Assembly (NCBI GenBank): GCA_002189035.1
Contig: NEEC01000002.1
Location: 3,968,001-4,032,000, forward strand
Length of the DNA stretch: 64,000 nt
Direction: 5' to 3'
From: Utricularia gibba
Lineage: Eukaryota > Plantae > Magnoliophyta
Below the pieces are notes generated by a model. It was not told the DNA's origin, made no database searches, and saw only the letters and a program-made list of their open reading frames with translations. The number at the start of each line of letters is the position of its first letter. Within the stretch, counting starts at the first letter, position 1. The translations under genes and the position numbers were made by a program. Below are positions 5,659-63,165 of the stretch, piece after piece.

Positions 5659-6590
5659 TGCAGTAAAATACCTGCTAATGGGGTACAAATCGAATGCGGT
5701 TAATCGGTCCCTAAAAAGCTTCCAAAAGGTGCTATGATGGGATAGCACTGACCGATAGACTGATATGTATCAAAGATTTGACAGCAGCAGCCATATTGCA
5801 CAACCTAAAAAGCAAACGAATTATAGCAGAGCAGGTGGCGATCATCTGAAAAGCAGGATCACAGTATAGGCACAAAAAGCAACCGGCATCTACAGAATTC
5901 AGGATTCGGTCAGATGGACCTCTTCTATAAGTAGGAGAAATTCTAAAGAGAAAGTAGTTCGACTCGAAGCCCTCCAACTTGTATCTTTTCCCAGCATCCG
6001 CGTCTAGTGAAGATTTTCCCGATGAGCTTCAATAGTTCTGTGGTTTTTCCATTCTCCGAAAGTTTCCACGTAAAAATCTTTGCCTATCTTCATTTCTTCT
6101 AAACGAAACGAGCGAAACATCAAAAATATAATCAAGTGTGGCACATCCAGCTGCACCCATAACCCGAAAATCAGCCTCCTCTCGGATACCGATTTTGTCC
6201 CGCAACACCTACACATAATAAATGTGCTTTGTGGAGATTGCTTGTTGCATTAGACTCAAAACCAACATGGCTTTCACCCGAGAGCATGTACACGATAAGC
6301 AATACCCTTCCTCACTACTTGATTGATTTCATATCTGTGAGTGTTCATTTTTCTACATTAGTTTCTCCAGTTTCTAGTTTTTGGTCGTTATGCAGATTGA
6401 TTGAAATTATATGTGCCTTTGTTATATGCTTTGATGCAGGAGTTTTATGAAGGTTACACCAAGTTGGTGCCTTCCACCTTTAATGCGAAACTAAAGCAGT
6501 ACTATTTGCTGCCATGTTTCCATCTATTTGCTAGAAATAAAAAACTACTGAGCGATTTTTTCAATGGTTTGTCATTTGCTAAAAGTAAAA
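5659..6590 (+). pseudogene. Unidentified spliced host-gene fragment (two exons) interrupted by a solo LTR
   Basis: Acceptor CTCTACAG at 5658; the exon reads KIPAHNKCALWRLLVALDSKPTWLSPESMY...DFIS once the LTR and one TSD are removed; phase-0 GT-AG intron 6337-6439; next exon EFYEGYTKL...YYLLPCFHLF. Confidence 0.55.
5676..6207 (+). mobile_element. Solo LTR, Tat/Retand-like family
   Basis: Homologous to the LTR at 15656; inverted termini TAATGGGGTACAAATCG / CCGATTTTGTCCCGCAACA; 5-bp flanks CCTGC/CCTAC. Confidence 0.85.
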
Positions 6591-6659
6591 AACTACTCAA
6601 CGGGGTAGTGCAGATGTACAAGACCCCGGCCTCATGACTATCAGTAGGGAATAGCTAAA

Positions 6660-8929: not shown

Positions 8930-11900
8930 CTTCTCTGAACGAGACTCCCCCATCAATACGATAGTACGGAATGAACCCCTAGTGGTGGTAGGGATATGCA
9001 GAAGCGCCAAGGTAAGAAGGATCCTCATCGACTAGGGATCCTCTTTCAATATCATGAAGAAGGAGGTGGCCGAATTACTCGCGTCATCCAGGGAGGGAGA
9101 TATACGCTCAATTCACATGGAATTATATGCTTTTGATCAACGGGACGTGCAGACAGTCGGAAAAATAACCTTGCCCGTGACATTCGGTGTTGCAAGGCGA
9201 AACTGAACTGAAAGGTTGGAATTCTTGATATTGGATTCGGAGGTCTCATATAACATCATTTTTGGCTGACCCGGTATCAACCGATTCGGTATGATACCCT
9301 CAACTATGCATCTGAAAGTTAGGTTCCCGACACCGAGGGGCATTTGTACGTTGGATATCGACCAACCAGCCGCCCAATCATGTTATGTGTCTTCCTCTCG
9401 AGATCCCTACGTGAAGAAGCCAAGAATAATGATTGTGGAAAGAGAACATCATGAACCTTCCAGGTAAGCAATGGAACCAGTAGGATACAAACAATTTCAG
9501 TTGGTATCGAAGGATGTGCAGAAGACGACCCGCATTGGCATCAACCTAGATACCGAATTTGAAAAAAGGTTAGTGGAACTTTTAAGAAAGAATGTCGATA
9601 TTTTTGCCTGAACTGCGGTGGATTTTGTAGGTATCGATCGATTTGTTGCCGAACATCACATTGATACCTATCTGGGAGCAATGCCGATTCGGTAGAAACA
9701 ACGGAATTTTTCCAAAGAGAAGTGTCGGATCATCAAAGAGAAAACGAGAGAGCTTCTAAAAGCTTGTTACGTAAAGGAGATTCAGTAATCCGAATGGGTA
9801 GCCAACCTTGTCGTTGTCCCGAAACCCGGGGAAAAATGGAGAATGTGTGTTGACTTCACCGACCTCAATGCCTACTGCGAAAGATTGATAAATTGGTAGA
9901 TGCCATTCCCGGGTCCCGATTTTTTAGCACCATGGATGCATATTCCGAATATCACCAGATTTTTATCGTAGAGAAGAACCAGCCAAAAACCACCTTCTAA
10001 ACCAAGGATGGGGTTAAGTGCTATGTTGCGATGCCCTTTGGATTGAGGAATGCTGGGGCTATTTACCATAGATTGGTGAAAAAAATCTTTTCTTCTGAAA
10101 TCGGTACTTCTATGGAGGTGTATGTGGACGATATGATCGTAAAATACATGAATGAAGAAGATCATTTGGCATATTTGGATTCTTGCTTCTCTCTATGTCA
10201 GTCACATGGGTTAAAACTCAACACGGTGAAGTGTTGCTTGGGGTGCAGAGTGGAAAGTTCCTTGGACATTATGTATCAGAAAGAGGGATCGAAGCCGACC
10301 CTGTGAAGATTAAGGCAATATGTGAAATGCAACCCTTGAGGACAATTAAAGAATATCAGAGCCTCATAGGTAAACTAGCTGCCCTCGGCTGATTCATATC
10401 TCGCTTGGCAGATAAGTCGGCACCCTTCTTCAAGGTCCTCCGAAAGGGAAATACTCTGTAATGCAATGAAGATTGTCGAGTCGCCTTCGAAAAACTCAAG
10501 GGATATCTCTCATCGCCTCCACTGTTAGTGGCTCCGAAGGAAGAGGAGCCCTTCGGGCTCTACTTATCAATATCACCCGTTCCGGTCAATGGAGTCTTGA
10601 CAACAATTTCGGGAGAAAAGCACCTACCGGTGTATTATGTGGGAAAGGTTCTCCTACCAGCAGAAACCCAGTACTCAGTAACCGAGAAGTTCATCTTAGC
10701 TTTGAAAGTGGCTGCTACGAAGCTAAAATCATATTTCCAAGATCGGCATATCGTGGTATTCACCAATCAACCATTGAAGAACATTCTGTCTTGAACTGAA
10801 ATTTCCGGAAGGAAAGCCAAATGGGCGGTCGAGTTAAGCACAATGGATATCGAATTCAGGTCAACAACGACGTTCAAAACCCAGCCTCTAGCCAATTTTG
10901 TAGTCAAAATGAATAGGCCTATCGACCAGTTTGTGGAAATCAATGACTGATGGGTCATGCATGTCAATGGTTCAACATATAATGGAGCTAGAGAAGGAAT
11001 CGACATCCGAACTCGAGACATGGAACACATTTATGTCACGGTGAAATTCTTATTTCCTGCCTCCAATAATGCCGCCGAGTATACAGCCTTGATTGAAGGA
11101 ATGAAAATGGCCAAGGAACACGGAGTTGCAGAACTCGATGCCTATACCGACTCATGGCTAGTCCAAGGTCAATTTTCAGGTGAGTACAAAACTCATGACC
11201 CTTTAATGGCTTTATATCGCGTTAAGGTGAAGGATCTGGTGAAGACCTTCAAGGAGTTTACCTTATTACACGTAGCATGCGAAGAAAACAGATCCGCAGA
11301 CAATCTTTCCAAGATTGCTGTAAGATTTCAGGAGCAAAGGAAGGGAGTGTGACAATCCGGTTGCAGGATCAACCCTCGGTAATCTTACAGGCAGTGAACC
11401 ATATTACCCAAAAACCGTTGAGCGACATCTCTCTGCAGCTAAATCCCCTTGAAGATTGGATGACGCTTTATATTCAGTATCTACAAAGCGGAGAAATGCC
11501 GCCTAACAAATCAAAGGCCTGAAAATTGGAGATTTGAGCAAAGAGGTATACACAGGTGGATGGAATTTTTTATCAAAGATCCTTTGATGGGCCTTTACTA
11601 AGGTGTATCGGGAAAGAGCATTCTCAAGACCTTACAACCGATTTACATGAGGGAAAATGCGGCAATCACGTTAGGGTTCGATCACTATGAAGGGCATTGA
11701 GAAGTGGATACTATTGGCCAACCATGAAGCAAGATATTACCGAAACAGTGAGGAAATGCAAGGTATACCTTGCCTGAGTGTTCGGTTTGTTACCTCCGTA
11801 AGACTATTGCTCACTTTTTTATGGTCAAGGAAATGCAAGCACGAAACTCGAGGATTTCAATGGGTCTTGGGCAAACCGGTTAGACGAAGTTTTATGGTCA

Positions 11901-12343
11901 TATCGAACCACCCCTCGAACCACTACAAAAGAATCTCCTTTCTTGTTAGTGTACGGATCGGAAACCATATGCCCGGTCGAATTAACACTGAAAAGCTACA
12001 GGGTGGAACACTACAATGAAGAGGAAATGCCGCTCTGCGAAAACTGGAGTTGGAGTTGTTGGAGGAGAAAAGACAGAGTGTTTACAGCCGACTAGGGGCT
12101 TATCAGAAAAGAACAGAGAGAAGTTACAACAAATCAATATCCCCGAGGGAATTCTCAGAAGGAGATTTGGTGCTTCGAAGCATCCAACCCCAAAAACATG
12201 TTGGAAAATTACAGCGCAATTGGGAAGGCCCTTATCGGATTTCAAGGGTGATTGAGAGAGGAGCTTATCGTCTAGAACAACTAGATGGCGTGGAATTTCC
12301 GAGGTCATGGAATGCATCTCATTTGAGGAAATACTACGCCTAG
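8930..12343 (+). pseudogene. Tat pol remnant (PR, RT, RNase H, additional RNase H, integrase lacking most of its core)
   Basis: MPFGLRNAGAIY..., YVDDMIVK; aRH 10957-11352 ASNNAAEYTALIEG...TDSWLV...NRSADNLS; integrase C-terminus KLQRNWEGPYRI...WNASHLRKYY. Confidence 0.92.
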
Positions 12344-12899
12344 TCGGCCAAATATCAATCCCTATTATAGATCTTTAGAGCACTCAGGTAGCTACATATT
12401 CCTCCAAACTGGAGATGAATCAACAACATTGTAAGCCCAGGCAAATCCTCTAAGTCTATAATAGCAAAGCATCCCAGGGCACCTCCAGAAGTATTGAATC
12501 CCCTAAACCCAGGCACTAGTGGAAATGGTAAGCCCTTGTACAAATCAGGACCGGATTCCATAAGCCCTAAGTAAAGATCTTATTACCGAATCTCGAGATG
12601 GTAAGTGCACCCAAAGCAGATCCGACTATGCCTTGAAAGCATAGATATTTGGCCAGAAGAGGGCCTATTTGGATTGGGGATGCAACTCAACCTAAGAGGG
12701 GTTTAATGTCCTTAGCAGCAGTCTTGCATGCATGAGAAAAGACTTAGGCAAAAAAGCCCAACCAAGACTCGCAAACCATGCAACGTGCAAATCAGAATAA
12801 TTGATAAAAAGCAGAGGCAATATGCAAAAACTAAGTAAACTGAAAGGAGGAATCCCAAATCAGGACCTCAAAATATATAAAAACCCCAAATCGGGGGCA

Positions 12900-15381
12900 A
12901 AAACATCAGTTTCAGAAGGAAGGAATTAAGGTTCATCAGTTTAGGGGCCGACATGTCCCTTCATCCTCGCTCTCAGCTTGGCTTCATTCTCCCGCCCGAT
13001 CCTAGCCCGAATAAGCGCTATTAAGCACTCCCGATCAGCATCAAACCCAAATTTTAGGGCTTGGAACACATCCACGATGACATCCAGCATGTTCTCTTCC
13101 TTCCTCAGGGGATCAGCCCTGTCGAAGCGCAGATCCGTGATCGATAACCCCAAATTTCTGGCTGATTTGGTGCATTTGCCGATATAGAAGTAGGCCGATT
13201 AGATCCCCGGCGTAGATGTCTGATAACTCGGAGAAGCAGGCCGATTTGACAAAATCTTCTAAAAGCCTCCCCCGAGACGCCTCTTGATTAAGCAACTCGG
13301 CTTCGAAGGCCGAAACACGATCCTTGGCTTGCTTCAGCTCTGCGTCCGCCTCCTCAAATCGCACTTTGAAGCTTTCCTTTTCAGAGTTAGCATCATCGAT
13401 CACCTTCCCCATTTCACCGATCAGGTTTTGCAACTCTTCTTCCCGGCGGGTACACTTTCCGAGCATACTTCTCAATGCACTCCCTTCCTCTCTCAATAAC
13501 TTTATCTTGGCATCTTTGGCCGCAACATGGGCTTGAAGCCGAGAAACTACCTCCGAGTGGGATCCCATTTCCTTGGCCATCCCCCATCCAAAGGTCAAAG
13601 CCTAGGAAAAAATCATTAAGTCAGAAACCGACTATAAACGATTCTGAGAAAGAGGTAGAATATCTATCAAATCCCCTTAAGTATGACTTCCGGCTGAACC
13701 CCTGAAACAGGGTTGCCTCCTCTAAGGCTCTTCGAAGCTCTAGGAGGACTGAAGATGGGGAAGAGCGGGATCCTCCCTTATCTGAATTGGAGGAGTAGGA
13801 ATTCTCCCTGTCTCATTCGGGCATGGAGGCATTAGCCAAAAAGAGCCCCGTGCCGAGAATGAGGCCTTCGGCGGGTTTCGGTGAAGGGGAGAGTTTCCCT
13901 TTTCCTTTCTCTGAAGGGGAGGAGGGTCGTCTCCCGAATCCTGGAAACCTCCTACCAGATCCTCCTTCGGGGAATGATCAGCAGCATTTGAGTGAGCCTG
14001 GGGTGAATCGGCCTGAAAGAAAAGTTAAAAAGGTTAGAGTCAGAGATTCATAGCGACGGGTCGCTAAAGCCGAGCAAACTTGTAAAGAAGGAACCACATC
14101 CGACTCCTGCATCCGGCACATCTCGTCGGAAAAGCGCACCATCATCGAGTCCTCCAAAGCACTCCTCCTTGCCATCCTCTTAACTGCACACCAGACCGAA
14201 ACGTATGAAAACAACAGCAAAGATTTTATGGCTAGGAGAACATTACGGGCTACCTTTCCGTTTTTTCGAGGGTTTCTGAGCGCAAACTTTAACCCTCTTC
14301 TTTTTCTTTGTAGCAAAGGGCTGAGTAGAAGATTCTGGAACAGAATCGGTGGGAATGGGAATAACCGGATCAGGAACAGAGGGGGCATCCGGAGTAGGAT
14401 TCGAAGTGGATGGAGATTGGAGAAGGTGCTAGAACTCCAATTCGGATCCCAAGGGAATAACAAAGTCCGGCCAATGACTATCTCAGCTACGCCCTAGAAT
14501 CCTGCAATTTATCAAAGACTCCCAAGAAAGCATTAAGGCTCGGGACTCGAACTTGGCAGTGCATCCACTGAGTTTCTGATCTACCTCCCTACGAGATTCG
14601 TTAAAGGGATGAAAACGACCGAAAAGCTTTACTTTGAAGGGAGTGGGTTTAGTCAGAAAATTCCACCTGGCCCCCGATGGGGGAGCAACCCAAATAAGAG
14701 AAGACCACTAGTTGTGGTGGATATCGGGAGCTTTTAGAATGAAATCAGGGTGATCTTCAAATCAGCAAAATTGGAAGTGGGAAAAACCATGCATTGGGTG
14801 CTTGCTTTACGGACGGCAATTTTGAAAAGTTGAAAAAAAATCCACTAGAGTCATATTCGGATCTAAACCCCCTGAATAGAAGACGAAGGTGGTGAAACAG
14901 AATATCGAGTTAGGGAAAAGACAAAAAAGAGAAACAACAAATATGTTCAAAAACTAGACGATAAGGGGGTGGAGGGCAAAGTGGAGACCACTCTCCAGGT
15001 AAGCTATAGGAATCGGAAGACTGAATCGAGGAAGGGGTTGTTCCCCCATTCCCCAAGGTATCTGGCTGTCCCTAGCCTGACTGACAATACACTCGTTGGG
15101 GATCGAATACTTAGCCCAAATAGCAGGAATGTTCAATTCGCTACTTCCTACCCATCGCAACTGAGGAAATCAGAAAACAGAAGAACTCAGAACGAACGGA
15201 AAAAAGCCCTAGGAGAAAGAGGCCCAAAAAGGAGTACCCGAATCCCCAAAACTGAGTGAAAAAGACAAAGAATAGACTAGTACCTTTGAAGACTTCGATT
15301 TTCAATGAGTTTCACGGCGGCAGATGCGGCAGATGCGGCAGATGAGTCCGATGGAGTTCGAAGAGCACTGGAATCACGCAT
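12900..15381 (-). pseudogene. Antisense multi-exon gene in the Tat 3' region (Transposase_28-like N-terminus, coiled-coil C-terminus)
   Basis: ORF 14954-15160 KYSIP...AYLESGLHFALHPL; coiled-coil ORF 13113-13598; minus-strand TATAAAT ~15426-15432, ATG 15381, donor ~15282. Confidence 0.65.
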
Positions 15382-22587: not shown

Positions 22588-24580
22588 TCAGAGGGAAACC
22601 TTGACATGGCTTCTTCTAAGCCACAGCTGATACATAACCAGATGAAAGGCATCGTAGTCCAGTGGCGAATTATACCATGAAAAATGCTTCTGCACCTTCA
22701 TCACGTTCCTCTGCATCTGCAAGTACTCGCCGGACGCCACCATTCCCCTAAGCACTTTCTTCATCTTTGGAATATCTGCAGACGTGAGCACTACGGAGAA
22801 ACTGTACCAGTTCAGAATATCAGAGAAGGGGAGCTCGTAGTAATCGGCCACAACCACCGGAACACACCCATAGTATATCGCATCCGCTGCTCTCCCCGTG
22901 TTCACTTCGTAACCCTTCGCATGAATGCAGAATTTACTGCTCATTAGCGCTTCGGAGTAGGGGTTTTGAGACGCGATCTGTGGACGGAGATGTCGCCGTC
23001 GTGTTCCCATGTATCAACGAGGAATTTGCGGACGGGAGAGTTCATTGCTCCGGCATAGAATGCTAGGGTTTTCCTGTAAAATCGATTTCGATTAGAAATT
23101 GCGGTAAAAGGGAAGGTACGAATCGAGAGAGGAGTCAACCTCTTTGAAGGCAACTTCATCGGAGGACGCCCTTTCCGCGGCCAGATCTGGGGAATTGGTG
23201 CATCTTTATGAGGAATGTACCCAGGAACGAAGTAGCTAGAGGAGCACACGGCTTGGATTGCGTTAAGCTTCACGTCAACGGCTTTTTCCATGGCCGTTCT
23301 CCCGACTGAATGGCAAACGACGTAGAAATGATCAGCGCCAGCGGTACGGTTCCAGTAAGGGTACCGGTGACTGATTTCGGCGATGTAGTCACGAACGAAT
23401 TTCTTGATTCCGCCGACACCGATTCGAGGGTCATTTCGCATTGCGGTAATTGAGAACGGCAGGTAGAAGAGATTCGCTTCCGATGGGTCGTCGGTGATGA
23501 AATGGCTTCTGAAGAGGGATCGCTTGAAATAACTCTCGCTGGCGTAGTTCCCCGTCGGCTCCGGCACCACCGGCAGGAAGACGGCAGCGAAGGGGTCGTT
23601 TTTCTTGCGAGGGTACGCAAATATTCTGAGGCTTTGTTCATTTCCTTGTAGTACTCCAAGAAGACTTCCCTATCGTGATAAACGTCGTTGTTTGCTCCGC
23701 TGAACGGCACTCTTTCCTCCGTTTCATTCATTCCGAGGATCACTTCACAGGGTTTGTTCTTCAAAAAAAAAAAAGAAAAAGAAGTGTAGTGTACCGTAGC
23801 ATAATTATTTTGAGTTTTCCCAAGAAAAAACAGAGAAAACCGAACATTTACTTGGCCATCGTTTTCCCATCCAAAGGCCACCTCTTCGTCGTCAGGGGAA
23901 CGAGAAGACTTTGGACCGCCGTCGGATAGGTCGTCGTTGTGCCCTTGAAACCGCACCTTCTCCTGCGCTTCTTTCGCATTGGGCATCACCTGACGATGTA
24001 GTAAAGGAACTGTCGAAGTGGGATACAAATAACAAAAGAACCGAGTACCGAATGGAGAAAATCAAATTACTGAATCGGTGAACACACATGTGATTACTGT
24101 AAAACCCCATGGAAAAATCAACGGACGTGATTGTGACACTCAAGACTTCAGTCACTACCCTTCAATATTGGTTCTACGTAAGCCAACAAAATCAAACTTC
24201 CAATAAAGGAAACAAGACAATAACGCCATACTAAATCAATGGTCAGTACTGAGAACAAGGCATTGACATGTCTCCAAGGTGCACGCACCTTCTTCTCCTC
24301 CCCATGTACAACACTAGTTCACCAAAACAAGTTGTTACCTCAGATTCCGGTGGCGAAGCTGCGGCTGCCGTCAACCTCCGATTATCCCAAGGCTTCACTT
24401 CCTCCACCACTGCTGGGTCATCCAAAGGAAGCACGGAGAAATTCATCCTAAATTCTGTTACATGAACAGGGAGCAATCCAACCTCTGTCTGCAGCTCCGA
24501 CGTGTAAGATATGTAGGAGAGAAGGAACATGGAGGAAGCAACGGCGGTTAGAACCCCAACAAGAAGGGGAACCGGCACGA
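22588..24580 (-). CDS. Exostosin/GT47 glycosyltransferase; two apparent -1 frameshifts, 5' exon structure uncertain
   Basis: GNYASESYFK...ANLFYLPFS...GADHFYVVCH; SKFCIHAKGYEVNTGRAADAIYYGCVPVVVAD; in-frame intron ~23077-23141; single-base deficits at 23633-23635 and 22960-22963. Confidence 0.85.
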
Positions 24581-38730: not shown

Positions 38731-41262
38731 CACGGAAAAAAAGAGAGGTGAATAAAGGGTCGAAAAGAAAAGAAAAGAAAAAACAATTGAGACCCAAGTC
38801 CTAAAAAGCAGCACATATTAAAAGAGCATGTGCGGACTTAATAAGTAATGAAAGGGTGAGCAGGGAAAGACTAATCCGGAGGAGTACGGAGGAGCGTGGT
38901 GTTATAAGGTGTGAGTGCTTGGCCAACACTCAGGAAAAAGAAAAGGCAATCATATTATGCCCGGATTAGTCTGGAACAAGCTGCCCCTTAATTACTCAAA
39001 AAAAGAGAAAAAAAAGAGAGAAGAAAAAATGGGTTGGCAACCGTGACCTTAAGTGACTTTGGAGGGATCAATTCTATAAGGTATGATCTTCGAAAACACT
39101 CCTCAAGAGGAATCTACTCATGCACATTTGAGTGATGAAATGACATGCACACTTGCACTTCTGTAGCTCATGCACCGAATTTATTCTCAGTTTTATGTTC
39201 ATCACTGATGCTGAAAGAACCAGTTTTCTGTTAGTCTTAGGTAAGACTTGGGGACAAATCTAGTGTCGTTGTAGCATAGTGTGATAACACACAAATTTTC
39301 ATGTTTTAGGATATGAAAAGTCATAAATTTTTAATTAGGTTTAAGTGTTTATTTTATATTTTTAAGTGTTTTTATTACTTTAGGAGGATGTCATTTTTGG
39401 AGTGATTAGTGGGCTAAATCCTTTGATTTAGCCCACCCCATGTCTAACCCGATTTTGGAGTCTAGCAGCAACCCAAGAATCAAGGAAAAATCTGGATTTC
39501 GTGCAAGTCACCGGGCTGCAGGGAGCAATGAGTATACTGTCACGGTGACAGTCTGCAAGTCAGGGCCAAGAGCAGCAGATCTGTCAGAGAATGTACTTGA
39601 CTTGGGCAGTGGGAGGCAAGAGAAAGATGGGGAGTTGCAAAAAGGGGAGAGACGACCCAGAATTTTTAGACACAGCACACACGAGGGGTTTCTCCCCAAC
39701 CCAACTCGAACACAAAGAACACGAAAGGAGGAGGAAGAAAAAGAATTTTTTTGGAGAAGAACTTCCAGCTTGAAGGCAGAAGATCAAGACCAGTTCAGCG
39801 CTATTGTTTCGGTCTAGGAACAGTAGCAGACGAAAACTAGACTGTTTACTGCTTTATTTTAGTTTGTTGATGTTTTTAGCTTTTGCACCCAACTTCTACA
39901 CAATGTTCTCGACATTTTCGTTGTTTTATGTTAATGCCATCATTTTTTACCTTCAAAGCATGAGTAGCTAAACCCTAGGAGTCTTAATAAAATTGACCAT
40001 TGTTTCTTAGCTTTTGTTTCCATCAAACCATGGGTAGACCTAAGGAAGGGAACAAATAACTTCATAGCTTAGATACTTGATTTAGAGGTAGACCAGCAAA
40101 TCAAGATGAGAGCAATAGGTGTTAGTCCGAGGTAGAACCAGTAGAACCAAGTAGACCTAATTCTATATGCTTTGCATGCGAGTAGACCTAATTGTAAGGT
40201 TGGTGATGATATGGAGGACTAACTTAGCCAAAAATGTGATGAATGACTTGGGTAGACTTAGGTTATTTGAAGTTGTGAGTGTAGGAATATGGTAGCTTAA
40301 ACTAGGAATTTTGACATCACACCATCTGCAGATCCTTAAGGCACGTTAGTATTATTCTGAGTTAGAACCAGTACCTGTTACCTTAGCGTTAAGACTTGAT
40401 ACTGTTTACTGATCTTGTTTACCGAACTTGTTTACCACTTTTGGTCCGAGCTTAGACTGAGACTTACCATTACTTTGAATTCTGCATCTCTTGAAATACA
40501 TGACAATCACAAGCTCCTTGTGATCGACCCCGAATTCCACTGTACACTTTCAATTTAATTTGTATTTTGTGAGAATTAGGGATTATAAATGTATTTGATA
40601 CGGAAGTTTACTTTTATTGCAATGACATGCTAAAATTTCCATTTATCAAATTGGCACCGTTGCCGGGAGCGGTGTTTAATTGTTTTGTGTTTTTAGTTGA
40701 TGCATTTATGTTCTTCTGGTGCAGGTAATCTCACTTTCCTCCTAGAAATTGAGAGAGCTATCAGCAAGAACAGGGTAAGAGTTAGGGAAGCAAGCAGATT
40801 GAGGCAGCTCCCACCCAAGACTAACAACAATCTCATAATGGCTGAACCTGAGAAGACCTTTAACGAATTGGATGCTGCTGATCATACTTACAGGTGTCTG
40901 TGCATCAGATTTCCAGAGGATGGAGCAAATGAGGTGAAACCAGCGATGATCAATTTTTTGCAAAAATTCTATGGAAAAATTGGTGAAAACCCCCATGAGC
41001 ATGTAGACAATGTAACAACGGTATGTACATCATTCAAGGGAGCTGGAATGACTGAAGATTCAATTTGTTTGAGAGTCTTCCAGTTTACCTTGGAAGGAGG
41101 AGCCAAAACGTGGTTCAACTCACTAAGGCCTAGAAGCAAAACCGATTGGGCTGGAATGAAGAAAGTGTTTTTGAGCAAGTATTTTCCAGCTTCCAAGGCT
41201 GAAGGTATTAGAAAAGAAATCAGTGATGTTGAACAAATGAGTGGAGAATCATTGCATCACAT
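38730..41262 (+). mobile_element. Athila family B segment: 3'-type region, LTR 39282-40648, PBS 40652-40668, truncated gag
   Basis: TGATAACAC...TTTATCA then TGGCACCGTTGCCGGGA; gag ORF 40697-41287 closely resembles 1217-1948. Confidence 0.88.
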
Positions 41263-41520
41263 TGTGAGGCAAATGGCGAATGCCTAGAAGGCGGAAACAG
41301 GATGTCTATAGTTCATGGAGAAAATATCATCACAAACTTTCCCAAACTGCAGGAGAACAATTTGGACATGCCCCTTCCATTCGAGTCGAGTTGTATCATA
41401 TTGTTCCACGAATTGAATATTCTTTATTGATGCAACAGTCACCCTATAATGAAAGTTCAAGCACCAACATTGTAAGTTCTTGAGCCATCTTGGGGCCTTG
41501 TTTCTCAAGACTGCATACTC
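41263..41520 (-). pseudogene. Tubby-like protein C-terminal fragment
   Basis: VLRNKAPRWLKNLQCWCLNFHYRVTVASIKN...VLLQFGKV.DDIFSMNYRHPVSAF*AFAICL matches the Tub-domain C-terminus. Confidence 0.9.
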
Positions 41521-41829: not shown

Positions 41830-44800
41830 CAGCCCCAATTTGTCTCTGAGTGGGCAAAATTTCTTAGGATATAGGAGTTTGGTCAAGATATCTGCTAATT
41901 GTTTCTCGGTAGGGACATATTTGAGCTTGATTTTCTTCTCCTTGATATAGTTTCAAACCACATGAAATTTTATCTGAATATGTTTGATTCACCATCATGA
42001 TAGCTGATTTGTTGTCCAAATAGATGGTCACTGGCTTGTCGATTTTAAGATTGAGATCTTTGAATATGTTACAAATCTATATTGTATGATTTGATACAGT
42101 TGCAACAGCCATGTATTCCACCTCAGAAGAGGATTGAGCAACTACACTCTATTTCTTGCTATTCCATGCGAATGCGCAGCCACTCAACATAAAGAGGTAT
42201 CGACTTGTAGATTTCATATCAAATTTATCACTTGTGTAATCACTGTCACAATACACCTATAAACATGGAGACATACCTTTTGAGTAGATAAGACCAAGAT
42301 TACATGTTTTATTTAAATACTTGAGTATCTATTTTCCAACTTCTAGGTGGGTGACTTGAGGCTCTTGCATGAATTGGCACAATAGATTGACCACGAAGGT
42401 AATGTCTGGTCTAGTGGTAGTCAGATACATGAGAGAACCTACAAGCTTGCAGTAAATATTTACATCTACGTTTTTTCCTTTTTCATAAAGGTCCTTTCTT
42501 GCTTCTGGTGTGATGGGTACAGACAAGCCCAAAGAGGAATTCATACCATATTTTCTTAGAAGATCCAGTGTATATTTCTTCTAAGAGACTACAACCGCTG
42601 TATCTGATTGTTTGATTTCCAGTCCTAGAAAGTAGGTCATCATACCCAAATTTGTGAGTTTGAATGCCTTTTTCAATCTCTCTTTTTCTTTATCTACCAG
42701 TTCGACATTACTTTTTGTCATGAGAATGTCATCAACATACAAAGATATAATAACTTGACTAGCAGTAGAGTTATTCTTCAATACATATAGTGTGTTATTA
42801 TTCGCGCTTCTTTGATATCCTTATTTCAAAAAATATTCATCAATTTTACTATACCAAGATCTAGGAGCTTGCTTGAATCCATATAAGGTTTATGTAGTTT
42901 ATAAACTTTATCCTCTTGTCCCTTGATAAGAAATCAAGGAGGTTGTTCAACATAGATTTCTTTAGTGAGATCACCATTGAGAAAAGCAGATTTTATATCT
43001 AAATGAAAGATGGGGCATTTTTTATAGACAGCCATGACAATTAACAACTTGATTGTATCCAGTCTTGCCAAGGGAGCAAAGGTATCGTGATAATCCACAC
43101 CTTCTCATTGTGTAAAGCCTTTGGCAACTAATCTTGCTTTGTATTTATTTATGCTACCATTTGGATTTGATTTTGTTCTAAGAACCCACCTTACTTCTAT
43201 AGCCTCTTGGATTTCACTCGATCAGTAAGGGTTCAGATTTTGTACTCATTTATATTGTCCAATTCAAGTTCCATAACCTTTCTCCACTCGGGATGAATCA
43301 AAGCGTAACTCAAGGAGGTAGGTTCATAATGAGTACTCAGGCATTAATCTTCATAAAATTAATTTATGGATTTGAATCCTTTCATAAGAGTGTGATCATA
43401 GGTCTTAGAGAACAAGAATGACGGTAAATATGAGGAATGAGCTTTTGTTTCTATGGCATGATCCATATGATTTTTGCTTTCCTCAATTAAGAAATATGTA
43501 TCATTGCACTCATTTTGATTAGGCAACTCGTTTAATCCATGTTCCTGCATGTCACTTTGATTCTCTTCATGGATTTCTATTTTATTTCTAATATCCATAA
43601 TTTCCTGAATAATTTCCAATGGAATAGAGGATCTCCATTTGCTTTTTTCGGAGGTAGTTCATTAATCTTTCCCAACTTGCATACTTCACAACAGTCCTTC
43701 ACCAATGTTAGATCATCCATTCCATCTACTAGTTTCGATTTTTTTGTCTTTGCTATAGATATTTGATTGTGGTGACCATATCGGCGATGCCATAATAACA
43801 TGCTTTTCTTTGATTCGGTGCTCAAACAGGTATGGCTGACTTCGACATTATTTCTCAAGAAATAGATGAGGAATGCCTTGTTTACCATAGGTATGACCAT
43901 AATTTCTTGTCCTGCATTGTTTGAAATGGTACATGCAAAGTTGGCAAATAATATTTTGAACCCTTTACTTACCAACTCACCCAAGCTGATCAAGTTATGT
44001 GATGCTGCGGGTACATAGAACACATCTTCAATCTGAATACATTTTGTTGAAGTCATCAATTGTATAGTTCCACATCCGAGTGTTGATATAAAGCTTCCAT
44101 CAGCTATTTTAATATTTCTAGATGTCAAATGAGTGTAATTCATAAATATAGAGAAATCATTAGATATGTGGTTAGTGCATCCACTGTCTGATAACCATGT
44201 ATATTTTTCTTGTTTATCTATTAGTGTAGTAAATATAATGTGTTTTCTTAAGGTTAGTATATCAGCATGAGTGTAGATCTGATCGGCTTCTTTTTCATCA
44301 ATGGTTTTAAAGGATACATTCTCCAGGGCTTTGGAAAAAGCTTCTTGTGAAAGACTAATGCTGAGGTTCCCTTTCAGACTCATAAGTTGTTTGTGCACTT
44401 GTGCAACCATTTCCTTTTTCAGATTGCAAATTTTTTCCGTGTGTCTTTTTTGATTGCAGAAGGTGTAGGTAGTCGAAGGATTCCACCAACAGTTATCTAG
44501 AACATGGGAGTTGGTAATTTTGCAATAGCAACAAGGTGGAATCTCACTTGTAGTGTTTGAGATTGCAAAATTAAACGATCAAAGTGTAGGAGGCTTGTAA
44601 GTATTTTTGAGTTTTTGATCTCCTTTCTTCTGCTCCAAGTGACCTACATAAAAAGCCTTCTCTTCCAAGTCCGTTGATTTAGTGTGCAACTCAAGTTTCT
44701 GAAGGTTTTCCAGTAGTTCTAGGTGAGTGAATCTTCTAAGGCAGCCCGTTGCTACCAATGAGGCGATTTATGAGTTGTTGGAGGCTGGAAGGGCATTGAG

Positions 44801-52290: not shown

Positions 52291-53389
52291 GGAAGACTTA
52301 GAGGTGGGTTCGGTTCCGAACCGTACGGTTTCGGTTCAGAACCGAACGGTTCCAACGAACCATCGGTTCCAAAACCGCGGTTCACTGTAGACAACGGTTC
52401 TGGTTTCGGTTCGGAACCATACAGACGAAACCTTGAACTGAACCGATACCGGAACCGTACGGACGGTTTCAGTTCGGAACCGGAACCGAGATTCGCGAAC
52501 CGAACCGTAACCGGAACCGATTGGTTACTGTTTATAGGTGTTTTCCAGACACCAATATGAATTATTGTGGGTGCTTGTCAGTGAAATTTGTAATAATTAT
52601 TATTTTTTTATATTTAAATATTATCAAACAATATATTTAATAATATTAATTTTTGTATTTAACCAGATATATTATGTAATATACTATATTAATTTATAAA
52701 AAACTATAACTTAAATTACTTGATAAACTATCTCAATAAAATATAATTAAAATCAATATAATTTGTGACTTAAATAAATGAAATAAATAATTAAATTATT
52801 AGTATTTGAATATATATTTGATAAAATTTAATTTTTTAAAACAAATACAATAAGATTACAAATCATATAAAATGAATGGAATTATTATTTATATATTTAT
52901 TTTTTTAAAATGAAGATATTTATATAGTTGTTTTATATAATCTTTTGTAAGTATTGTGTATTTTTCAAATTAAAATAAAATATCATTTATTTCATATATT
53001 TTGGAAACAAAATATTAGAAGGATTAAATATATTGCATTTTCGAAAGTAAGATCACATATTTCACGTTTCTTAATAATCGTTAAAGGTGTCCAGGCTCCA
53101 AAGAAGATCCTAGGCACCCTCAATAACGGATCAGAGTGTCTGGACAACCTCTAACCACAACCCTAATTCTGAGGCTCACGCTGCCCAGGCATTAGAGGCA
53201 CCCTTAGAAATCATTATACGTGCCTCCAAAATGAATTTAAAGGATCACTATTCACTAGAGCATATTTCACACGATGCATATGAGAATTCAACGAATGTAA
53301 CACTAACAACAACATAATTGTCTACTAGAAAAAAAAATCATCAACAAAAATATTTCAACTACATCATAAGTGTTCAAAAGAACTAATAT

Positions 53390-55415
53390 TAGAGGCTCCC
53401 TCTAACAATCTTATAGGCATGCATAATACTCCCATAAGGCATGTCCCTCACGTATGGGAGGCTGTTCTATTCAGTTCTCAATAACATAACTTGGAACATC
53501 ATGAACATACCGTAACCCTTCAAGGAAAGTCTGCATCTCACCATCAACATTTAGTGATGTATCATCCCTATTAGTATGCGAATAGGGACTTGGAAAAACA
53601 GCATTATATTCCTGAAAAATTAATGGTTAGTTTTGATGTGTAACCAAGTGTATGGTAGAGTAGAAAAGCTAAAATGACTTACCGGATTTTTCATTGACTT
53701 GTGAGGCAAATCATCAATCAATAAGGTGTTGTGACAGTCATATCTTGAGTTTAATCCATTGTTGACAGCCCATACACGACTCAACTCCTTCATATAGACC
53801 GTGTTGCTAGGATTGCTGTGAACACGTACACCCGTGTTCGTAGTCATCGTTTGATCCCACACAAAAATGAGTTTATCAAATAATGAAGGTGGAAAGACCC
53901 ATTTAGTGATTGCTTGTAGCTGCTCCCTACAAAATAAATCAATTGCAAGAATTGGCACCATTCTAAATACCAACCAAAAAAAAAGTAACATACGTACCCG
54001 CCACGAGATGACCATAACGCTACATCAAAATTATCCATGCACCACCTAATAAAGTCACGAGCATATGGACGTAGAAAGACTGCATAAATTACACTAAAAA
54101 ACACCTATGATATCTGACAAATCTTGAATGCATATAACACACAAAATAAGTGTTGTGTTAATACCTGATCGGCCATATATAATTTTATCTGGAGGGATTC
54201 GTGACCTTGACGGTCCAGCCCTATACACGATGTCTGCGAGCACACCATTGACATCCAAGATTATCTGCTTTCGTTGAGGCTCAGAGGCAATCAAAGAGGG
54301 TCCGGTATATGCCCAATGGCTCTCATACCAATCCAACTTGGAGCGAAGCTCTTCATTCTCCTTTGTTATAAATTCAAGTATCTCATCTATATCATTGAGA
54401 TCATGTGTGAGCTCGTCCCCTTCAACATCATTACTTTCTTGTGTCCTTTCATTCCTAGACAAATCTTTATTCTTTTGGGATACTCTAGGATTCTTCAACA
54501 CACCACACCAATAACGTTTTGTCCCCGGTGCATCCACAAATGGTGGTAAAATGTCAACAAAACTCCTTTGCATACTGGAGAAAAAGAGTATAAGATCTTG
54601 TACATCCCTCTTGTGCAAGGTATCAAATCCTACAATAAATAAAGATTCATTAACAATAGATTAAACAAAAATATTCAATAAAAATATTAAATATGAGTAA
54701 TTTTGATAAGTCTAAACTCAACAACAATAAATTGAATACACATATTCGAAAAGAGTATTGAAAAAAAATATTCAATAACACTAAACTGTATAAATATATA
54801 CCCAATAAGAATAGATTAAAAAATATTCAATATTCAATAATGATAGACTGAATAAAAATAGATAGAAAAGTATTCAATAAGAATAGATTGAACAAAAATA
54901 CATTGAAAAAAAAAATATTTCTAAAAAATAATGAATAAGAATAGAATAAAAAAATTAACAAACAAATTTAATTAGATTAGATCGAATAAAAGTATAATAA
55001 GAACAGAATAAAATACATTCCTCAAATCCTCTTCTCACATCTGTCACTAGTACCAACCTTTTTTTCCCCTTTAGGGTGTAGTGGTTCTTGTTTGGAGTCC
55101 TAAAGAATACACTCACAGCAAAAAAATAACGAAGTTTCACCTCAAGAGATAACTTCTCACAAAAGCCAACACATATGAGATAAATCTTGGAGTCAAATGA
55201 GATAATGGAATCTCTAAACATTCTAATATTTCTTCTTAAAAGGACAACAATAGTAAGCGCAAACCACAATGAAAATGCTCCGTGCTTAAGGCAAATCCCA
55301 TTGGACCCACACGGTTTGGAATTTCAGTTTCAATCAACTCATCCGGTTCTTTGTCCCAAATCTCATACCCATCTGGTATCAAGAATCTAGTTCTCAATTT
55401 TTCAGAAGTATACAT
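53390..55415 (-). pseudogene. Transposase_28-like plus FCP1/NIF HAD-like fusion gene (copy 2)
   Basis: MYTSEKLRTRFLIP...STEHFHCGLR; ILDVNGVLADI; VFLRPYARDFIRWCMDNFDVALWSS; NTLLIDDLPHKS; VFPSPY...LWEYY; in-frame stops in first and last exons. Confidence 0.85.
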
Positions 55416-56192
55416 CTACAAAACACCCATAGGTATTGTATAAAAAATCAAACTACAATAATTGAACAAGGTATTTCAATTTGGAACATAGATCAGCAAC
55501 CCATGATGGAAAATAAATCACATACTTTGTTTAATTTAAACAACACTCCAAGTAGGTGGTGGGACTGTGGGGGCGTCCGGTCGCTTTCGGCTGGGGGGGG
55601 GGGGGATGGGGGAAAGAGGTAAGAAAATTTTCTTACCGGATGGGTGGGGATTAGGGTTGTCTTAATTGTTAACGTGGGGAGTGGGTAAAGTGGGGACTGG
55701 GGTGGTGATTTGTAGCGCTATGTATGGGTGCGTGAAGAGTTGGTTTAATTACCGAAATCATTAGGTAATGATTACGCGCAATATGTCTCTAGATTCATAG
55801 GTTGTCAGTAATTATTTTTGTTGATTTCAGATGAGAAGTGTCGTAGCTTGAATCGATCCGAACCCACTGTGTAATTTTTTTGGAAATGCTGTTTAATTAC
55901 TCCAATTTTGAGGCACCCAGAGTCGCTAATGTGGGCGTCTGGCACCGTCACCCATAAAATTATATTATCTAGGCATCTGTACCCTAATATTTGGGAATTG
56001 CGCAATTTTAAAAGAAGACTTAATTTTCAAAAACATACCATTGTTTTCGTGCATTAATTGGAATATAAGAAATTGAAAATGAAATTCTTTCATATATCCT
56101 AAATATTATAAAAAAAATTAAATGACATGTTAATTAAACATTGAAATAAAATTTCAGTAAATAAAAAATTTTCATGTGTCGTTTAGACCATC

Positions 56193-56615
56193 TTCCAGAC
56201 ACCCATATTGTCTCGTGTGGGTGTCTGGAAAGACAGTGGGATACCCTTTTCAAGGCACCCATAATGCCTCGCGTGGGTGTTTGGGAAGAGTGGACGAGAC
56301 CATTTGCAGGCACCTATATTTGCTCATATGGGTGTATGGGAGTATGCAACCATATTCCAGGCACTCTATCTTTAGGAACGATAAGGATCGAGTCCATTAT
56401 TTATTTGATTTAAAAATATTGCACTCTATCCTTATGTTTTCTAAGGATCGAATATCAGTGTATAATAAAAAAATGCATTCTATATTTAGGAACAATAAGG
56501 ATCGAGTGTATTATTTATTTGACTTGAAAATATTGCACTCTATCCTTATGTTCGATCCGTATGAGTGCAACCCTATTCCAGGCACCCACATTTGCGCATG
56601 TGGGTGTCTGGTAAG
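56193..56615. repeat. Array of palindromic TTCCAGRCACCCA-N12-TGGGTGTCTGGAA units plus a duplicated internal block
   Basis: Perfect 13-bp inverted repeat 56193-56230; related units at ~56250, ~56305, 56576-56613; block 56362-56440 repeated at 56477-56560. Confidence 0.85.
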
Positions 56616-56649
56616 GATGTATCCAAAGGTTTTGGTAAGTGCCCGGATC

Positions 56650-57665
56650 ATATAATTTTAATGAAAGACATGAATACAACGTACTTCATCTTCATACAAA
56701 GTAATAGTACTTCATAAAGCATTTGAAGTAATAGGATTCATGCTACTTTTCAAAATGTCAATAGCATTTGTATTTGTAGAGGCATTAGCCAAAGAAATAG
56801 AAAAAAATCCTATCAGATATTCTATAAAATGCTGTGACCTTTTCAATGATTTTAGCCATAGAAAAACCATTATGTGGTGATGGTTATTCTTGAAAAGCTA
56901 AAATTCATTTTTGCTTACACCAAGAATTATCTACCCAAGAACATGTAATAACAATATAACTCTCATTATTACAACCTTTCCAACCATCACAAGTCAAATA
57001 AAAATTACATTGTAGAGATTTAAAAGTAGAAATTAAAGAGTCACGCATGTTTTTAAAATCCTCAAGTGTCATATGATGCAAGGTTTTCCTAGAAAAATTT
57101 TTGTATCCCGGTTGAGCTTGTTTCAACATATCATTAAAAGAAGATTTTTCAACTAATGAAAAAGGAAGTTCATTAAGTATCAAATAACGGACCACACTTA
57201 CTTGAAAAGGTTTATAATTAAAAACAAAATTAGATAATCCCACACTATTATCACCCCCTAAACATAATCTAGTCTGACGAAACTGTGGTTATTTATCATT
57301 ATGCTTCTCCCTAACATGCCTCTTATATGTACCGGTTCCCCAACCTTTTTTGAAAGTATACTCTTTACCCCAATGTTTACAACAAATTTTTTCGGGATTA
57401 GAAACAACAAAATGCTCTCCAACATCCAAAGAATCATCACTAGAATTTTTGATCTTTTACGAAAAAGAAGACTTGATGAGGTTGAAGAACCCACTTCTTG
57501 AGTACTAGAAAAATCATCATGTTTGGGTAAGGGACCACATTCAAGCTCTTGTAAAAATTGAAGGTCTTCCCCAAAAGAAAATTCTCTATCATTTTCAAAA
57601 ACGCAAGGTATAGTAGAATCAGCTTGAGAAGCTTGAGAAGAATTTTTTAAATCAAACCTCTCCAT
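56650..57665 (-). pseudogene. hAT transposase N-terminal half
   Basis: LILNELPFSLVE...FSRKTL...LTCDGWKG...YIVITCSWVDNSW; ends just after a VRCIH (CxxH-like) motif. Confidence 0.88.
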
Positions 57666-58729
57666 GTTGTAAAAAATAAAAAAAAACCTGTTACCCTGCA
57701 GGCCTCACCAATGTCGTCCAAGTGGAAATTTGAAATTCGATACTTCAGAATATCTACAATTACGAGTTGTATGTAGAAGTTGAAATAGAATTATTTCTGG
57801 TAATGAGTGATGAGATAATAAGAGGAAGTAATGGAAAACTATAAGACAGCCATATCATATATATAGATAAATTTTTTATTAAATTAATAGCAACGGATAC
57901 TTTCAAAACCATGTGCAACTCCACAGTGTGCACAGTCACAAATGCATTTACTAGCCATTGAGATTAATATATACATAAAAAATATATTTTAAATATGATG
58001 CTGCCACGGTAGTTTTCACATGAATATTTTAAATATATATTTATGTTTAAATATGCATTGTGCTACCAATATAGATAAATTAGAGATATTAGCAATGCAT
58101 AACTACTTATTGAGAAAAATATGTAGATAATGAAATTTTAAAATATTTATTTGGTTGAACTATCGAAATTATTCAATAAATTTGAGTAATTTAGTATTTT
58201 TCTATTGAAGTTATACATTTTATATTTATTAATTTCATTCTAATTTTATAATTTATAGTATATAAATAAATGAAATAAATTATTAAAGTGATAAAATTAT
58301 CAGTAATTGAAAACATATATAATAAAATTACATTTTTTCAGACATCAACATTAGCTTGTGAGTGTTCAGGAAGAACATCTGAAAGACACAGACCATTCCT
58401 GGCCACCTGCATTTACTCATGCCTCATGTAAGAGTGTCATGAGGGCACTTGAAATCATTTTCCAGGCACCCACATCTATCGTCAGCATGTCTAAGAAGGG
58501 ATGTTTCAGAAGATTTTCCAGGCACCCACTTCCATCGTATGGGTGTCTGAAATCATATACATTTATTTATTTTTTTAATTTTTTAAATTTTTTAAATTTT
58601 TTTTATTTTTTTCGGTTCCAAACTGACGGTTTCGGTTCGGAAACGTGAACATTACGGTTCATACACGGGTCGGAACCCTCGGTTCCACGGTTCCAAATTT
58701 GCCGAACTGAACCCACCTCTAGGAAGACT

Positions 58730-62413: not shown

Positions 62414-63165
62414 ATGCTCGGTATCGCAGCATCAGCGGCTTGTGTTGTCGTTCCTCCCATCCGCCTCAGCGTGTTCAGGATGTCGTCAGCCGTCGCTTCT
62501 GCTAATATCATCGAACACGTCGTCCTCTTCAAAGTCAAACAGGACGCCGATCGGCCGCCGTGGGTGCGATGCTCAGCAACCTCAATTCTCTTGTCTCTCT
62601 CGACCCCGTCCTCCATCTCTCCGCCGGTCCTGTTTCTCGCTGCCGAAGCCGGTCTAATCTCACCTTCACCCACATGCTCCACTCTCGGTACAAATCCGCA
62701 TCCGATTTGGTCGCCTATGCCCAACACCCCACTCACGTGGGCGTTGTCGCAAACTACGTCAAGCCGGTGGTCGATGACGTTATGGCCGTCGATTGGATCG
62801 CCGAGGACTTCACTGGTTCCCCTGTGCTTACTCCTGGGTCGATCTTGCGGCTCACTGCCTTGAAGCTTAAGGAAGACACCACGCAGATAGGTAAAAGCGA
62901 GGTTTTGAGGGTTACGCGGGGAATTCGGGACAAGTTCCCGTCAATTGAACAGTTGACAGCAGGGGAGAACTTCTCACCTGATAGAGCCAAAGGGTTTTCC
63001 ATCTGCTCCATTGCAGTTTTCAAGGGAGGAAGGGAACTGGAGGCATTGGATTCGGAGGAGGAAGCAGTCAACGAGGAGAAGAACAAGGTGAGGGAGTTCC
63101 TCGACAGCGTTGTGGTGTTGGATTACCCGGTGGCGCTGGCAGCAAACCCGTCGGCAAGCCTATAG
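62414..63165 (+). CDS. UP3: Stress-response A/B barrel (double Dabb) protein, UP3-like; apparent -1 frameshift at ~62552
   Basis: IIEHVVLFKVK...FTHMLHSRY...HPTHV...DDVMAVDW...GENFSPDRAKGFSI; N-terminal extension; C-terminus ASL. Confidence 0.85.

Follow-up and report, generated by a model that had tools for sequence, protein, structure and literature searches.

A decayed TRP28–NIF fusion gene carried by a non-autonomous hAT element in Utricularia gibba

A broken gene and its hAT carrier

We analysed a 64,000-nucleotide window of the Utricularia gibba genome (assembly GCA_002189035.1, contig NEEC01000002.1, positions 3,968,001 to 4,032,000 of the forward strand), in which a hAT element spanning 52299–58721 encloses a five-exon fusion gene on the minus strand (53411–55415). 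This gene, hereafter copy 2, joins a TRP28 domain (Transposase_28, PF04195) to an acidic linker and a NIF/HAD-like domain; its exons were traced from the sequence and its landmark peptides located. A comparison partner, copy 1, lies at 29146–30913 on the minus strand and was delimited by open reading frames, alignment and Pfam PF04195. A preliminary description, made from the letters of the window alone, had proposed that the two loci are diverged copies of one fusion gene and that the second sits inside a hAT element. On the evidence below, copy 2 is very probably another copy of that transposon-borne gene inside a hAT element, now dead; the description had overlooked that it is broken.

Copy 2 starts at a minus-strand ATG at 55415, opening with MYTSEKLRTRFLIP (MYTSEKLR). 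Exon 1 (55017–55415), which holds the TRP28 domain and is truncated at its 3′ end, was delimited by reading all three frames and by PF04195 matches with X placed at the breaks. Exon 2 (54629–54165), defined by open reading frames and alignment to copy 1, encodes the end of the TRP28-side region (YWCG), the acidic linker, a coiled-coil-like segment (ENEELRSKLDWY) and HAD motif I (LDVNGV); an Atlas feature search with this exon indicated NIF, as a lead only. Motif II (...ALWSSRGG) falls in exon 3 (54079–53998; Pfam NIF positions 39–61 of 160, E 0.022), which is 73% identical in DNA to its counterpart in copy 1, and motifs III and IV (...LLIDDLPHK...NP) fall in exon 4 (53926–53683; NIF positions 81–125 of 160, E 0.039). 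Exon 5 (53611–53471), identified by alignment and a family profile, completes the NIF/HAD-like domain and ends at a premature TGA (53473–53471). Behind this stop lies an ancestral C-terminal tail of 19 codons and a TAA (53411–53470, TAA at 53413–53411), recognised by tblastn, family alignment and profile: the tblastn match to copy 1 extends past the TGA to 53408, the tail aligns with that of the plant family, and the plant-family profile match crosses the premature stop. The three introns between exons 2 and 5 are all GT..AG, in phases 1, 2 and 0. Among the RNA runs listed, none held the stretch, and the exon structure is that predicted from the sequence.

The gene carries four lesions—an in-frame TAA in exon 1 (55238–55236), a −1 frameshift at a T-run in the same exon (55167–55153), the loss of about 33 codons from the 3′ end of exon 1 downstream of 55016, and the TGA at 53473–53471, 20 codons ahead of the ancestral TAA. 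Copy 2 is a pseudogene and yields no functional product. In place of the lost exon 1 end, intron 1 holds an AT-rich minisatellite (54639–54947), found by repeat analysis as an 8-copy family with about eight units akin to AATATTCAATAAGAATAGATTGAA, across which read depth drops. Upstream of the gene, 140–325 nt from the ATG, a G-rich tract (55556–55740) reaches 47% G on the plus strand and includes a 13-nt poly-G run (55593–55605); it may be a 5′ untranslated region or promoter of copy 2, since an acceptor-like AG stands immediately 5′ of the ATG. The first 59 residues (55239–55415), before the TRP28 core, have DUF3805, Mog1 and PsbP-like clusters as their nearest Atlas neighbours (score 0.93, with only 123 shared features), a weak lead.

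The carrier has the ends of a hAT element. Its 18-nt terminal inverted repeats, at 52299–52316 (plus strand, starting TAGAGGTGGGTTC) and 58704–58721 (minus strand), begin with TAGAGG and match at 17 of 18 positions (94%), and they are bounded by a perfect 8-bp target-site duplication, GGAAGACT, at 52291–52298 and 58722–58729. Subterminal CGGTTC/GAACCG repeats, comprising three repeat families, occupy 52304–52520 on the left, and CGGTTC repeats occupy 58612–58700 on the right, so that the motifs cluster at both element ends. Repeat analysis further identified hairpin units near both ends: one at 52537–52582 (TTCCAGRCACCCA...TGGGTG), which abuts the inverted end in other copies, and others at 58340–58552. 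Degenerate units, including a small palindrome (TAGAGGCTCCCTCTA, 53390–53404), were read just downstream of the gene at 53090–53404, and an internal cluster lies at 55901–56615, within which two 78-nt direct repeats (56361–56552) are 91% identical. Of the 15 matches in the window to the hairpin motif TTCCAGGCACCCA..TGGGTGTCTGG, 12 fall within the element, and they flank the gene on either side. A motif search also found an internal 10-mer, CCGAACCCAC (55858–55867), that is the same as the inner part of the inverted end; the three CCGAACC sites of the window are all within the element, one of them in this 10-mer. The 10-mer and the palindrome could derive from a former second hAT end. We tried an inner hAT-like element running from the TAGAGG at 53390 to the 10-mer at 55858 and rejected it, as its ends are unpaired and no target duplication accompanies them.

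On the same strand as the gene, 56731–57665 holds a broken transposase remnant, delimited by open reading frames, zf-BED and Atlas. It appears to correspond to the N-terminal third of a hAT transposase, with the BED finger (zf-BED E 0.023, below cut-off) and the start of the RNase-H-like region, and its Atlas neighbours are Ac transposase and DAYSLEEPER-like clusters (score 0.96, 206 shared features). It lacks the catalytic and dimerisation parts, and the element is therefore non-autonomous. Inverted ends and target duplication bear out the earlier placement of copy 2 inside a hAT element, and the probable Ac-type remnant is in keeping with it. When metagenomes were scanned for the 18-nt inverted end, 18 loci came up; they had no further likeness to the element or the gene and are chance matches.

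The two copies and their plant relatives

Copy 1 starts at an ATG at 30913, opening with MNTSEKLRLRFNIP (MNTSEKLR), and its exons 2–5 lie at 30317–29887, 29794–29713, 29665–29425 and 29355–29146. It too has decayed: exon 1 carries two frameshifts and one stop, and exon 4 has a stop of its own. Its intron 3 (29666–29712) is just 47 nt, below the usual plant intron length, and has probably been partly deleted.

The peptide landmarks quoted in the preliminary description (YWCG/FWCG, ENEELRSK/ENEPLKQQ, IYGR, WSSRGG and both starts) were all located on the minus strand at the two sites, and each ATG is directly preceded by TAG, thus following an AG acceptor as described. The introns match as claimed: all six, three per copy between exons 2 and 5, are GT..AG and interrupt the same codons in phases 1, 2 and 0. 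At the protein level, exons 2–5 are identical at 120 of 293 positions (41%) and exon 1 at 65 of 139 (47%; pairwise E 3e-42, with stops and frame breaks set to X), such that homology spans TRP28 part, linker and HAD part alike rather than the HAD domain alone. DNA alignment recovered only pieces of exons 1, 3 and 4, at 67–77% identity, and no non-coding DNA common to the two copies; a recent local duplication is therefore excluded, and the duplication separating the copies is, judged by this divergence, old. The description of the copies as homologous yet clearly diverged was thus sound.

The setting of copy 1 is less clear than that of copy 2. A MULE transposase remnant lies 2.3 kb from it, and its matches to DBD_Tnp_Mut (E 0.034) and MULE (E 0.11) are both weak, so that of the two DNA-transposon superfamilies originally named, hAT is established for copy 2 and the MULE context of copy 1 is confirmed only weakly. 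Hairpin-repeat arrays flank each copy (28370–29095 and 30960–31520 around copy 1; 53090–53404 and 55901–56615 around copy 2), with cores that differ by carrier, CTGTAAT..ATTACAG in the former and CCAGGCACCCA..TGGGTGCCTGG in the latter. These arrays might be template-switching hot spots.

Relatives of the NIF/HAD-like domain were found among plant proteins. Single exons (3 and 4) gave colinear, weak matches to Pfam NIF (PF03031), at 14.9 and 14.1 bits, below cut-off. The two-copy alignment of exon 4, used as a query, found 38 short plant proteins from Panicum, Eleusine, Arundo, rice (Os03g0755800) and Taraxacum; many of them are already annotated with PF03031, and two have full-domain matches (E 1e-19 and 3e-21). 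A profile of ten NIF-family proteins then scored 140 and 135 bits against the spliced copies (135 for copy 2), and it is through this profile of full PF03031 proteins that copy 2 matches the family over the whole domain. The exhaustive HMMER search with exon 2 (154 amino acids) returned one spurious repeat protein and nothing else; word-indexed searches with a 174-amino-acid open reading frame and the two-copy exon 2 alignment returned nothing, under a length window of 0.55–1.75x that bars relatives of about 500 amino acids; and sequence searches of the PDB with exon 4, the relative P0007 and the family profile were blank or spurious.

The relatives share an unusual motif I, LDLNG[LV], which reads LDVNGV in copy 2 and FDVNGI in copy 1. 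In the two-Asp motif DxDx(T/V), the Asp at +2 is the general acid in FCP1/SCP enzymes; here the nucleophile Asp is retained and the Asp at +2 is replaced by Asn. Because the second catalytic Asp is Asn, phosphatase activity is, on sequence, doubtful across the whole DLNG subfamily. The motif II Ser/Thr and the motif IV acidic pair are present in copy 2 (ALWSS, LLIDD), and the SPYK next to motif IV reads LPHK. A structural model of a relative, not of the window protein (P0007; pLDDT 69, pTM 0.72), had SCP1, SCP2, SCP3, TIM50, UBLCP1, CTDNEP1 and Fcp1 as its top PDB matches (E 1e-5 to 1e-3, TM 0.5–0.6), which suggests SCP1/CTDSP, TIM50, UBLCP1, CTDNEP1 and Fcp1 as structural kin of the NIF-like domain, as modelled in this relative. 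Three DLNG-type plant proteins (P0002, P0007 and P0026) are auto-named ‘TIM50’ in public databases, a name that probably mirrors the shared fold only.

Gene structure ties the copies to each other and to this family. Genes of Panicum and Taraxacum, and the many predicted proteins that read through introns, indicate five introns in the NIF region. Both copies keep three of these in the same phase (one in the Val codon that follows RGK/YGRS, one in codon six of WSSRxx and one behind NP) and both lack the other two (at W|D and after SLG). The three retained introns imply that the HAD-like domain was copied from genomic DNA. In a maximum-likelihood tree of the HAD region, sampled with 11 fragmentary NIF-family members, mostly from grasses, copies 1 and 2 formed one clade (support 100/99, stem 1.35), apart from the sampled proteins; separate grouping with different relatives, the outcome against which the preliminary description had asked to be checked, was not seen. 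Through full-length homology, common introns and common intron losses, the sequences support a derived gene structure shared by the copies beyond the fusion itself, and one fusion rather than two captures, in agreement with the claim that both loci hold the same gene.

The window copies resemble DLNG-type plant NIF proteins such as that of rice Os03g0755800 in their colinear full-domain match, including the C-terminal tail, in the same motif I change (Asn at +2), in WSS and DD, and in the three intron positions and phases. They differ in forming a separate long-branched clade without two of the introns and a 4–5-residue insert, and in being repeated, decayed and fitted with a TRP28 N-terminus. 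In Panicum virgatum, a partial DLNG-type NIF gene and a MULE transposase form loci 3.6 kb apart (6001–7066 and 10724–12955 of locus L001); this locus has no TRP28 exon and no long inverted repeats enclosing the two. Some ‘host’ NIF-family references may themselves lie in or near transposons. In the literature accessible to us, searches on the fusion, on At3g29760/At4g26190 and on NIF with transposons turned up no account of a TRP28–NIF fusion.

Copy number, shared lesions and the TRP28 frame offset

We surveyed four public DNA runs deposited under the same species label, in which contigs numbering hundreds to thousands, at 85–99% identity, cover the whole 6 kb. The gene and the whole hAT element are multi-copy, and in two of the four runs the gene reached about twice the depth of hAT-specific parts. 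Differences among contigs were mostly C>T and G>A, as in methylated (silenced) repeats.

The contigs separate lesions private to copy 2 from others that it appears to share. At 55237 all other contigs have an A, giving TTA (Leu), and the stop at this site is therefore private to copy 2. At 55016, ten contigs run on, encoding WTSFVWICPP where copy 1 has WWTSFVWVSPP, and the loss of the exon 1 end is therefore local to copy 2. Other copies likewise proceed with different sequence at 56731, which marks this position as the deletion point of the transposase. At the exon 1 frameshift, by comparison, no well-supported indel was found among the rows listed (there are 85 indel rows more), and for this reason the frameshift is probably common to the close relatives of copy 2. 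Diverged contigs (87–94% identity) run from the 3′ end of the gene into the hairpins downstream of it, and from the ATG region into the G-rich tract and the hairpins upstream, showing that the gene and its present flanks were amplified together. Repeat boundaries seen in other contigs at 53391 and 55422 were considered as alternative junctions and rejected, being diverged continuations of the same flanks and not new ones.

A frameshift occurs at the matching point of the TRP28 domain in both copies. When its stop and frameshift were set to X, copy 2 was matched by PF04195 (curated cut-off 26.2 bits) at 32.1 bits (E 1.4e-7, profile positions 4–62 of 69), and copy 1, with X at the breaks, at 28.0 bits (positions 3–66 of 69); the unbroken pieces alone scored 23.5 and 18.2 bits, respectively, under the cut-off. 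A −1 shift is required at the matching place in each, at 55167–55153 in copy 2 and 30656–30637 in copy 1, and LTP is separated from CE by 26 nt in the former and by 38 nt in the latter, both 2 modulo 3. Codon comparison detected coding constraint on either side of the shift. For independent decay to have produced a shift at the same spot in both copies is improbable, with a chance of roughly seven in a hundred, and the offset may instead reflect recoding or a shared ancient lesion. Two specific causes were considered and gained no support: a tiny intron, for which the candidates were 20–42 nt or would destroy conserved coding sequence, and ribosomal slippage, for which copy 1 has no slippery run.

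Beyond this offset, the two copies bear the marks of protein-coding descent. In exons 2–5 the synonymous proportion of differences (pS) was 0.736, a saturated value, against a non-synonymous proportion (pN) of 0.404; in exon 1 the values were 0.738 and 0.324. Differences were greatest at third codon positions, and all internal indels in exons 2–5 were whole codons. These patterns support the view that most of the divergence between copies 1 and 2 arose under coding constraint, pointing to long past purifying selection. The earlier proposal of an old family maintained under selection thus holds for the ancestors of the copies and fails for copy 2 itself, as this copy is dead and its close multi-copy relatives probably have the same exon 1 frameshift.

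The same data bear on whether this is a transposon gene at all, or an ordinary host or domesticated gene caught between two inserted hAT elements. A second hAT could conceivably have left the internal hairpin cluster and the TIR-like 10-mer as relics, and Pack-type elements can form by re-mobilising neighbouring insertions (PMC8903248). On the other hand, the gene is repeated at 85–99% identity with the substitution spectrum of silenced repeats, its TRP28 domain has been reported from transposons only (PMC11963269), a second copy stands beside a MULE transposase remnant, and the copy in question is broken. We consider a trapped host gene very improbable.

Elsewhere in the window, 1217–1948, 22944–23570, 40697–41287, 43577–44410 and 62560–63165 hold gag and integrase pieces of retrotransposons, part of a GT47 exostosin-like gene, and a gene of the Dabb type (stress-responsive A/B barrel).

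Origin of the cargo and its possible role

The explanation that we favour treats copy 2 as a decayed copy of a transposon-borne fusion gene that became the cargo of a hAT element; taken as a whole, with its capture history and proposed function, we hold it to be somewhat more probable than its alternatives combined. A TRP28 domain, an acidic coiled-coil-like linker and a NIF/FCP1-type HAD domain would have been joined in one ancient fusion, ancestral to copies 1 and 2, whose HAD-like part would descend from the intron-containing plant DLNG gene family, and which would then have evolved for long under purifying selection. For the later history, taken as one sequence of events, our confidence is about even. 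A hAT element may have acquired the gene, by then already transposon-borne, without the ends of its former element; the route could have been template switching during gap repair or composite re-mobilisation in the style of Pack-hAT elements. The hAT would next have been amplified with its cargo already frameshifted, and copy 2 would finally have gained its private stop and lost its exon 1 end. The element would be movable only with transposase supplied in trans, presumably binding the subterminal CGGTTC repeats and the hairpin units.

The strongest rival holds instead that an autonomous hAT lineage has long carried the gene as an accessory one, and that the element is an internal-deletion derivative which lost most of its transposase and kept the gene downstream. 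The arrangement is what one might expect of a resident gene: it shares the strand of the transposase remnant, in the order end, transposase, hairpins, gene, hairpins, end; hAT-type hairpins stand on both sides of it; the junctions between gene and flanks recur in diverged copies; and the breakpoint at 56731 is an ordinary deletion beyond which other copies continue. Against residence, transposase is classically the sole gene that hAT elements encode, the doubled depth of the gene in two runs suggests that it may occur elsewhere too, and the frameshift probably common to close relatives leaves no sign of selection within the hAT subfamily. We favour capture over residence because the gene is more abundant than the hAT parts and a MULE transposase remnant stands beside copy 1, and we regard residence as rather unlikely.

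The preliminary description had offered hAT capture or a nested MULE derivative as origins. Of these, the nested MULE is unsupported: the block shares only exon DNA with copy 1, it has no bounding repeats or 9-bp duplication, and hAT hairpins lie on both sides. Considered more broadly, as a nested gene-carrying transposon with eroded ends (derived from a MULE or PIF/Harbinger element, or itself a small hAT-like one), an insertion of this kind would accord with the frequency of nesting in plant genomes, with a block somewhat more abundant than the hAT parts, and with the TIR-like 10-mer at 55858–55867 and the TAGAGG at 53390 on the other block edge. Yet no inverted repeat of useful length surrounds the block, the candidate edges lack a target duplication (3–4 of 8 matches), no non-coding DNA is common to the MULE-side copy, and the breakpoints at 53391 and 55422 are diverged continuations of the flanks. 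Nesting is thus improbable, more so than residence.

Returning to capture, the element can be compared with Pack-TYPE transposons, non-autonomous DNA transposons with captured coding DNA that include hAT members (PMC8903248). Like Pack-hAT elements, it is non-autonomous, has hAT ends and an 8-bp duplication, carries foreign intron-containing coding DNA and was amplified with its cargo (PMC8903248). Ends, target duplication and cargo were all observed; the weak joints among the reads lie in AT-rich DNA and have short sides. It is unlike them in that the cargo is a whole multi-exon gene rather than fragments, that this gene belongs to a transposon family with a history of purifying selection, and that the element retains a piece of transposase.

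Several observations weigh against the explanation that we favour. A single capture and residence in a hAT lineage both fit the present data, such that capture and long residence are not separable here. The common −1 shift is poorly explained by plain independent decay, and it is seemingly also present in the close relatives of copy 2. The tree is small, fragmentary and heavy in grasses, both window copies are long-branched in it, and one member, from Panicum, adjoins a MULE transposase and is perhaps not a clean host reference. Synonymous divergence (dS) is saturated, so that the ratio of pN to pS is qualitative only, and the helper function considered next is purely inferred.

What the intact protein did can be suggested only tentatively. 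In a reading that we rate, as a whole, as rather unlikely to be right, its TRP28 part might have targeted nucleic acid or chromatin, and its SCP/FCP1-like module might have bound phosphoserine, or dephosphorylated it very slowly, for example on the polymerase CTD, to the benefit of the transposon. Still more speculative, and in our view improbable, is the idea that the TRP28–NIF gene is a selfish helper cassette passed between unrelated superfamilies (hAT and MULE, with the TRP28 part from Retand) and selected through an effect on host transcription or silencing, the −1 offset in TRP28 perhaps being regulated recoding. The protein might, for instance, attach to the chromatin of transposons by way of TRP28, and its Asp-Asn HAD site might trap a polymerase CTD or dephosphorylate it slowly.

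Two kinds of known system can be compared with the gene. Accessory or captured transposon genes include the ULP1-protease genes of KAONASHI MULEs and VANC of VANDAL MULEs. As in those systems, a non-transposase gene lies inside cut-and-paste transposons and was conserved beyond what is expected of dead cargo, and it may plausibly serve the transposon in coping with silencing or transcription by the host; the present gene differs in its TRP28 and NIF/HAD-like content and in its association with more than one transposon superfamily. The TRP28 domain, for its part, is the hallmark of an antisense open reading frame in Retand LTR retrotransposons; it has been reported only in transposons of flowering plants, its role is unexplained, and DNA binding has been predicted for it (PMC11963269). 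The window gene has the same PF04195 domain above cut-off (with X at the breaks), the same link to transposons and the same predicted DNA binding (PMC11963269). Unlike the Retand frame, it is spliced to a phosphatase-like domain and resides in DNA transposons rather than between POL and the 3′ LTR.

Non-transposase genes of transposons that are kept by selection are rare, and they are informative about the dealings of transposons with host defences; known cases are captured protease genes and anti-silencing factors. A TRP28 and CTD-phosphatase-like fusion present in at least two cut-and-paste superfamilies, with long purifying selection behind it, would, if true, represent a new kind of helper, and would supply the unexplained TRP28 domain with a testable partner activity. 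Dead as it is, copy 2 has its value as evidence of a gene that may have crossed superfamily borders without the ends of its former element.

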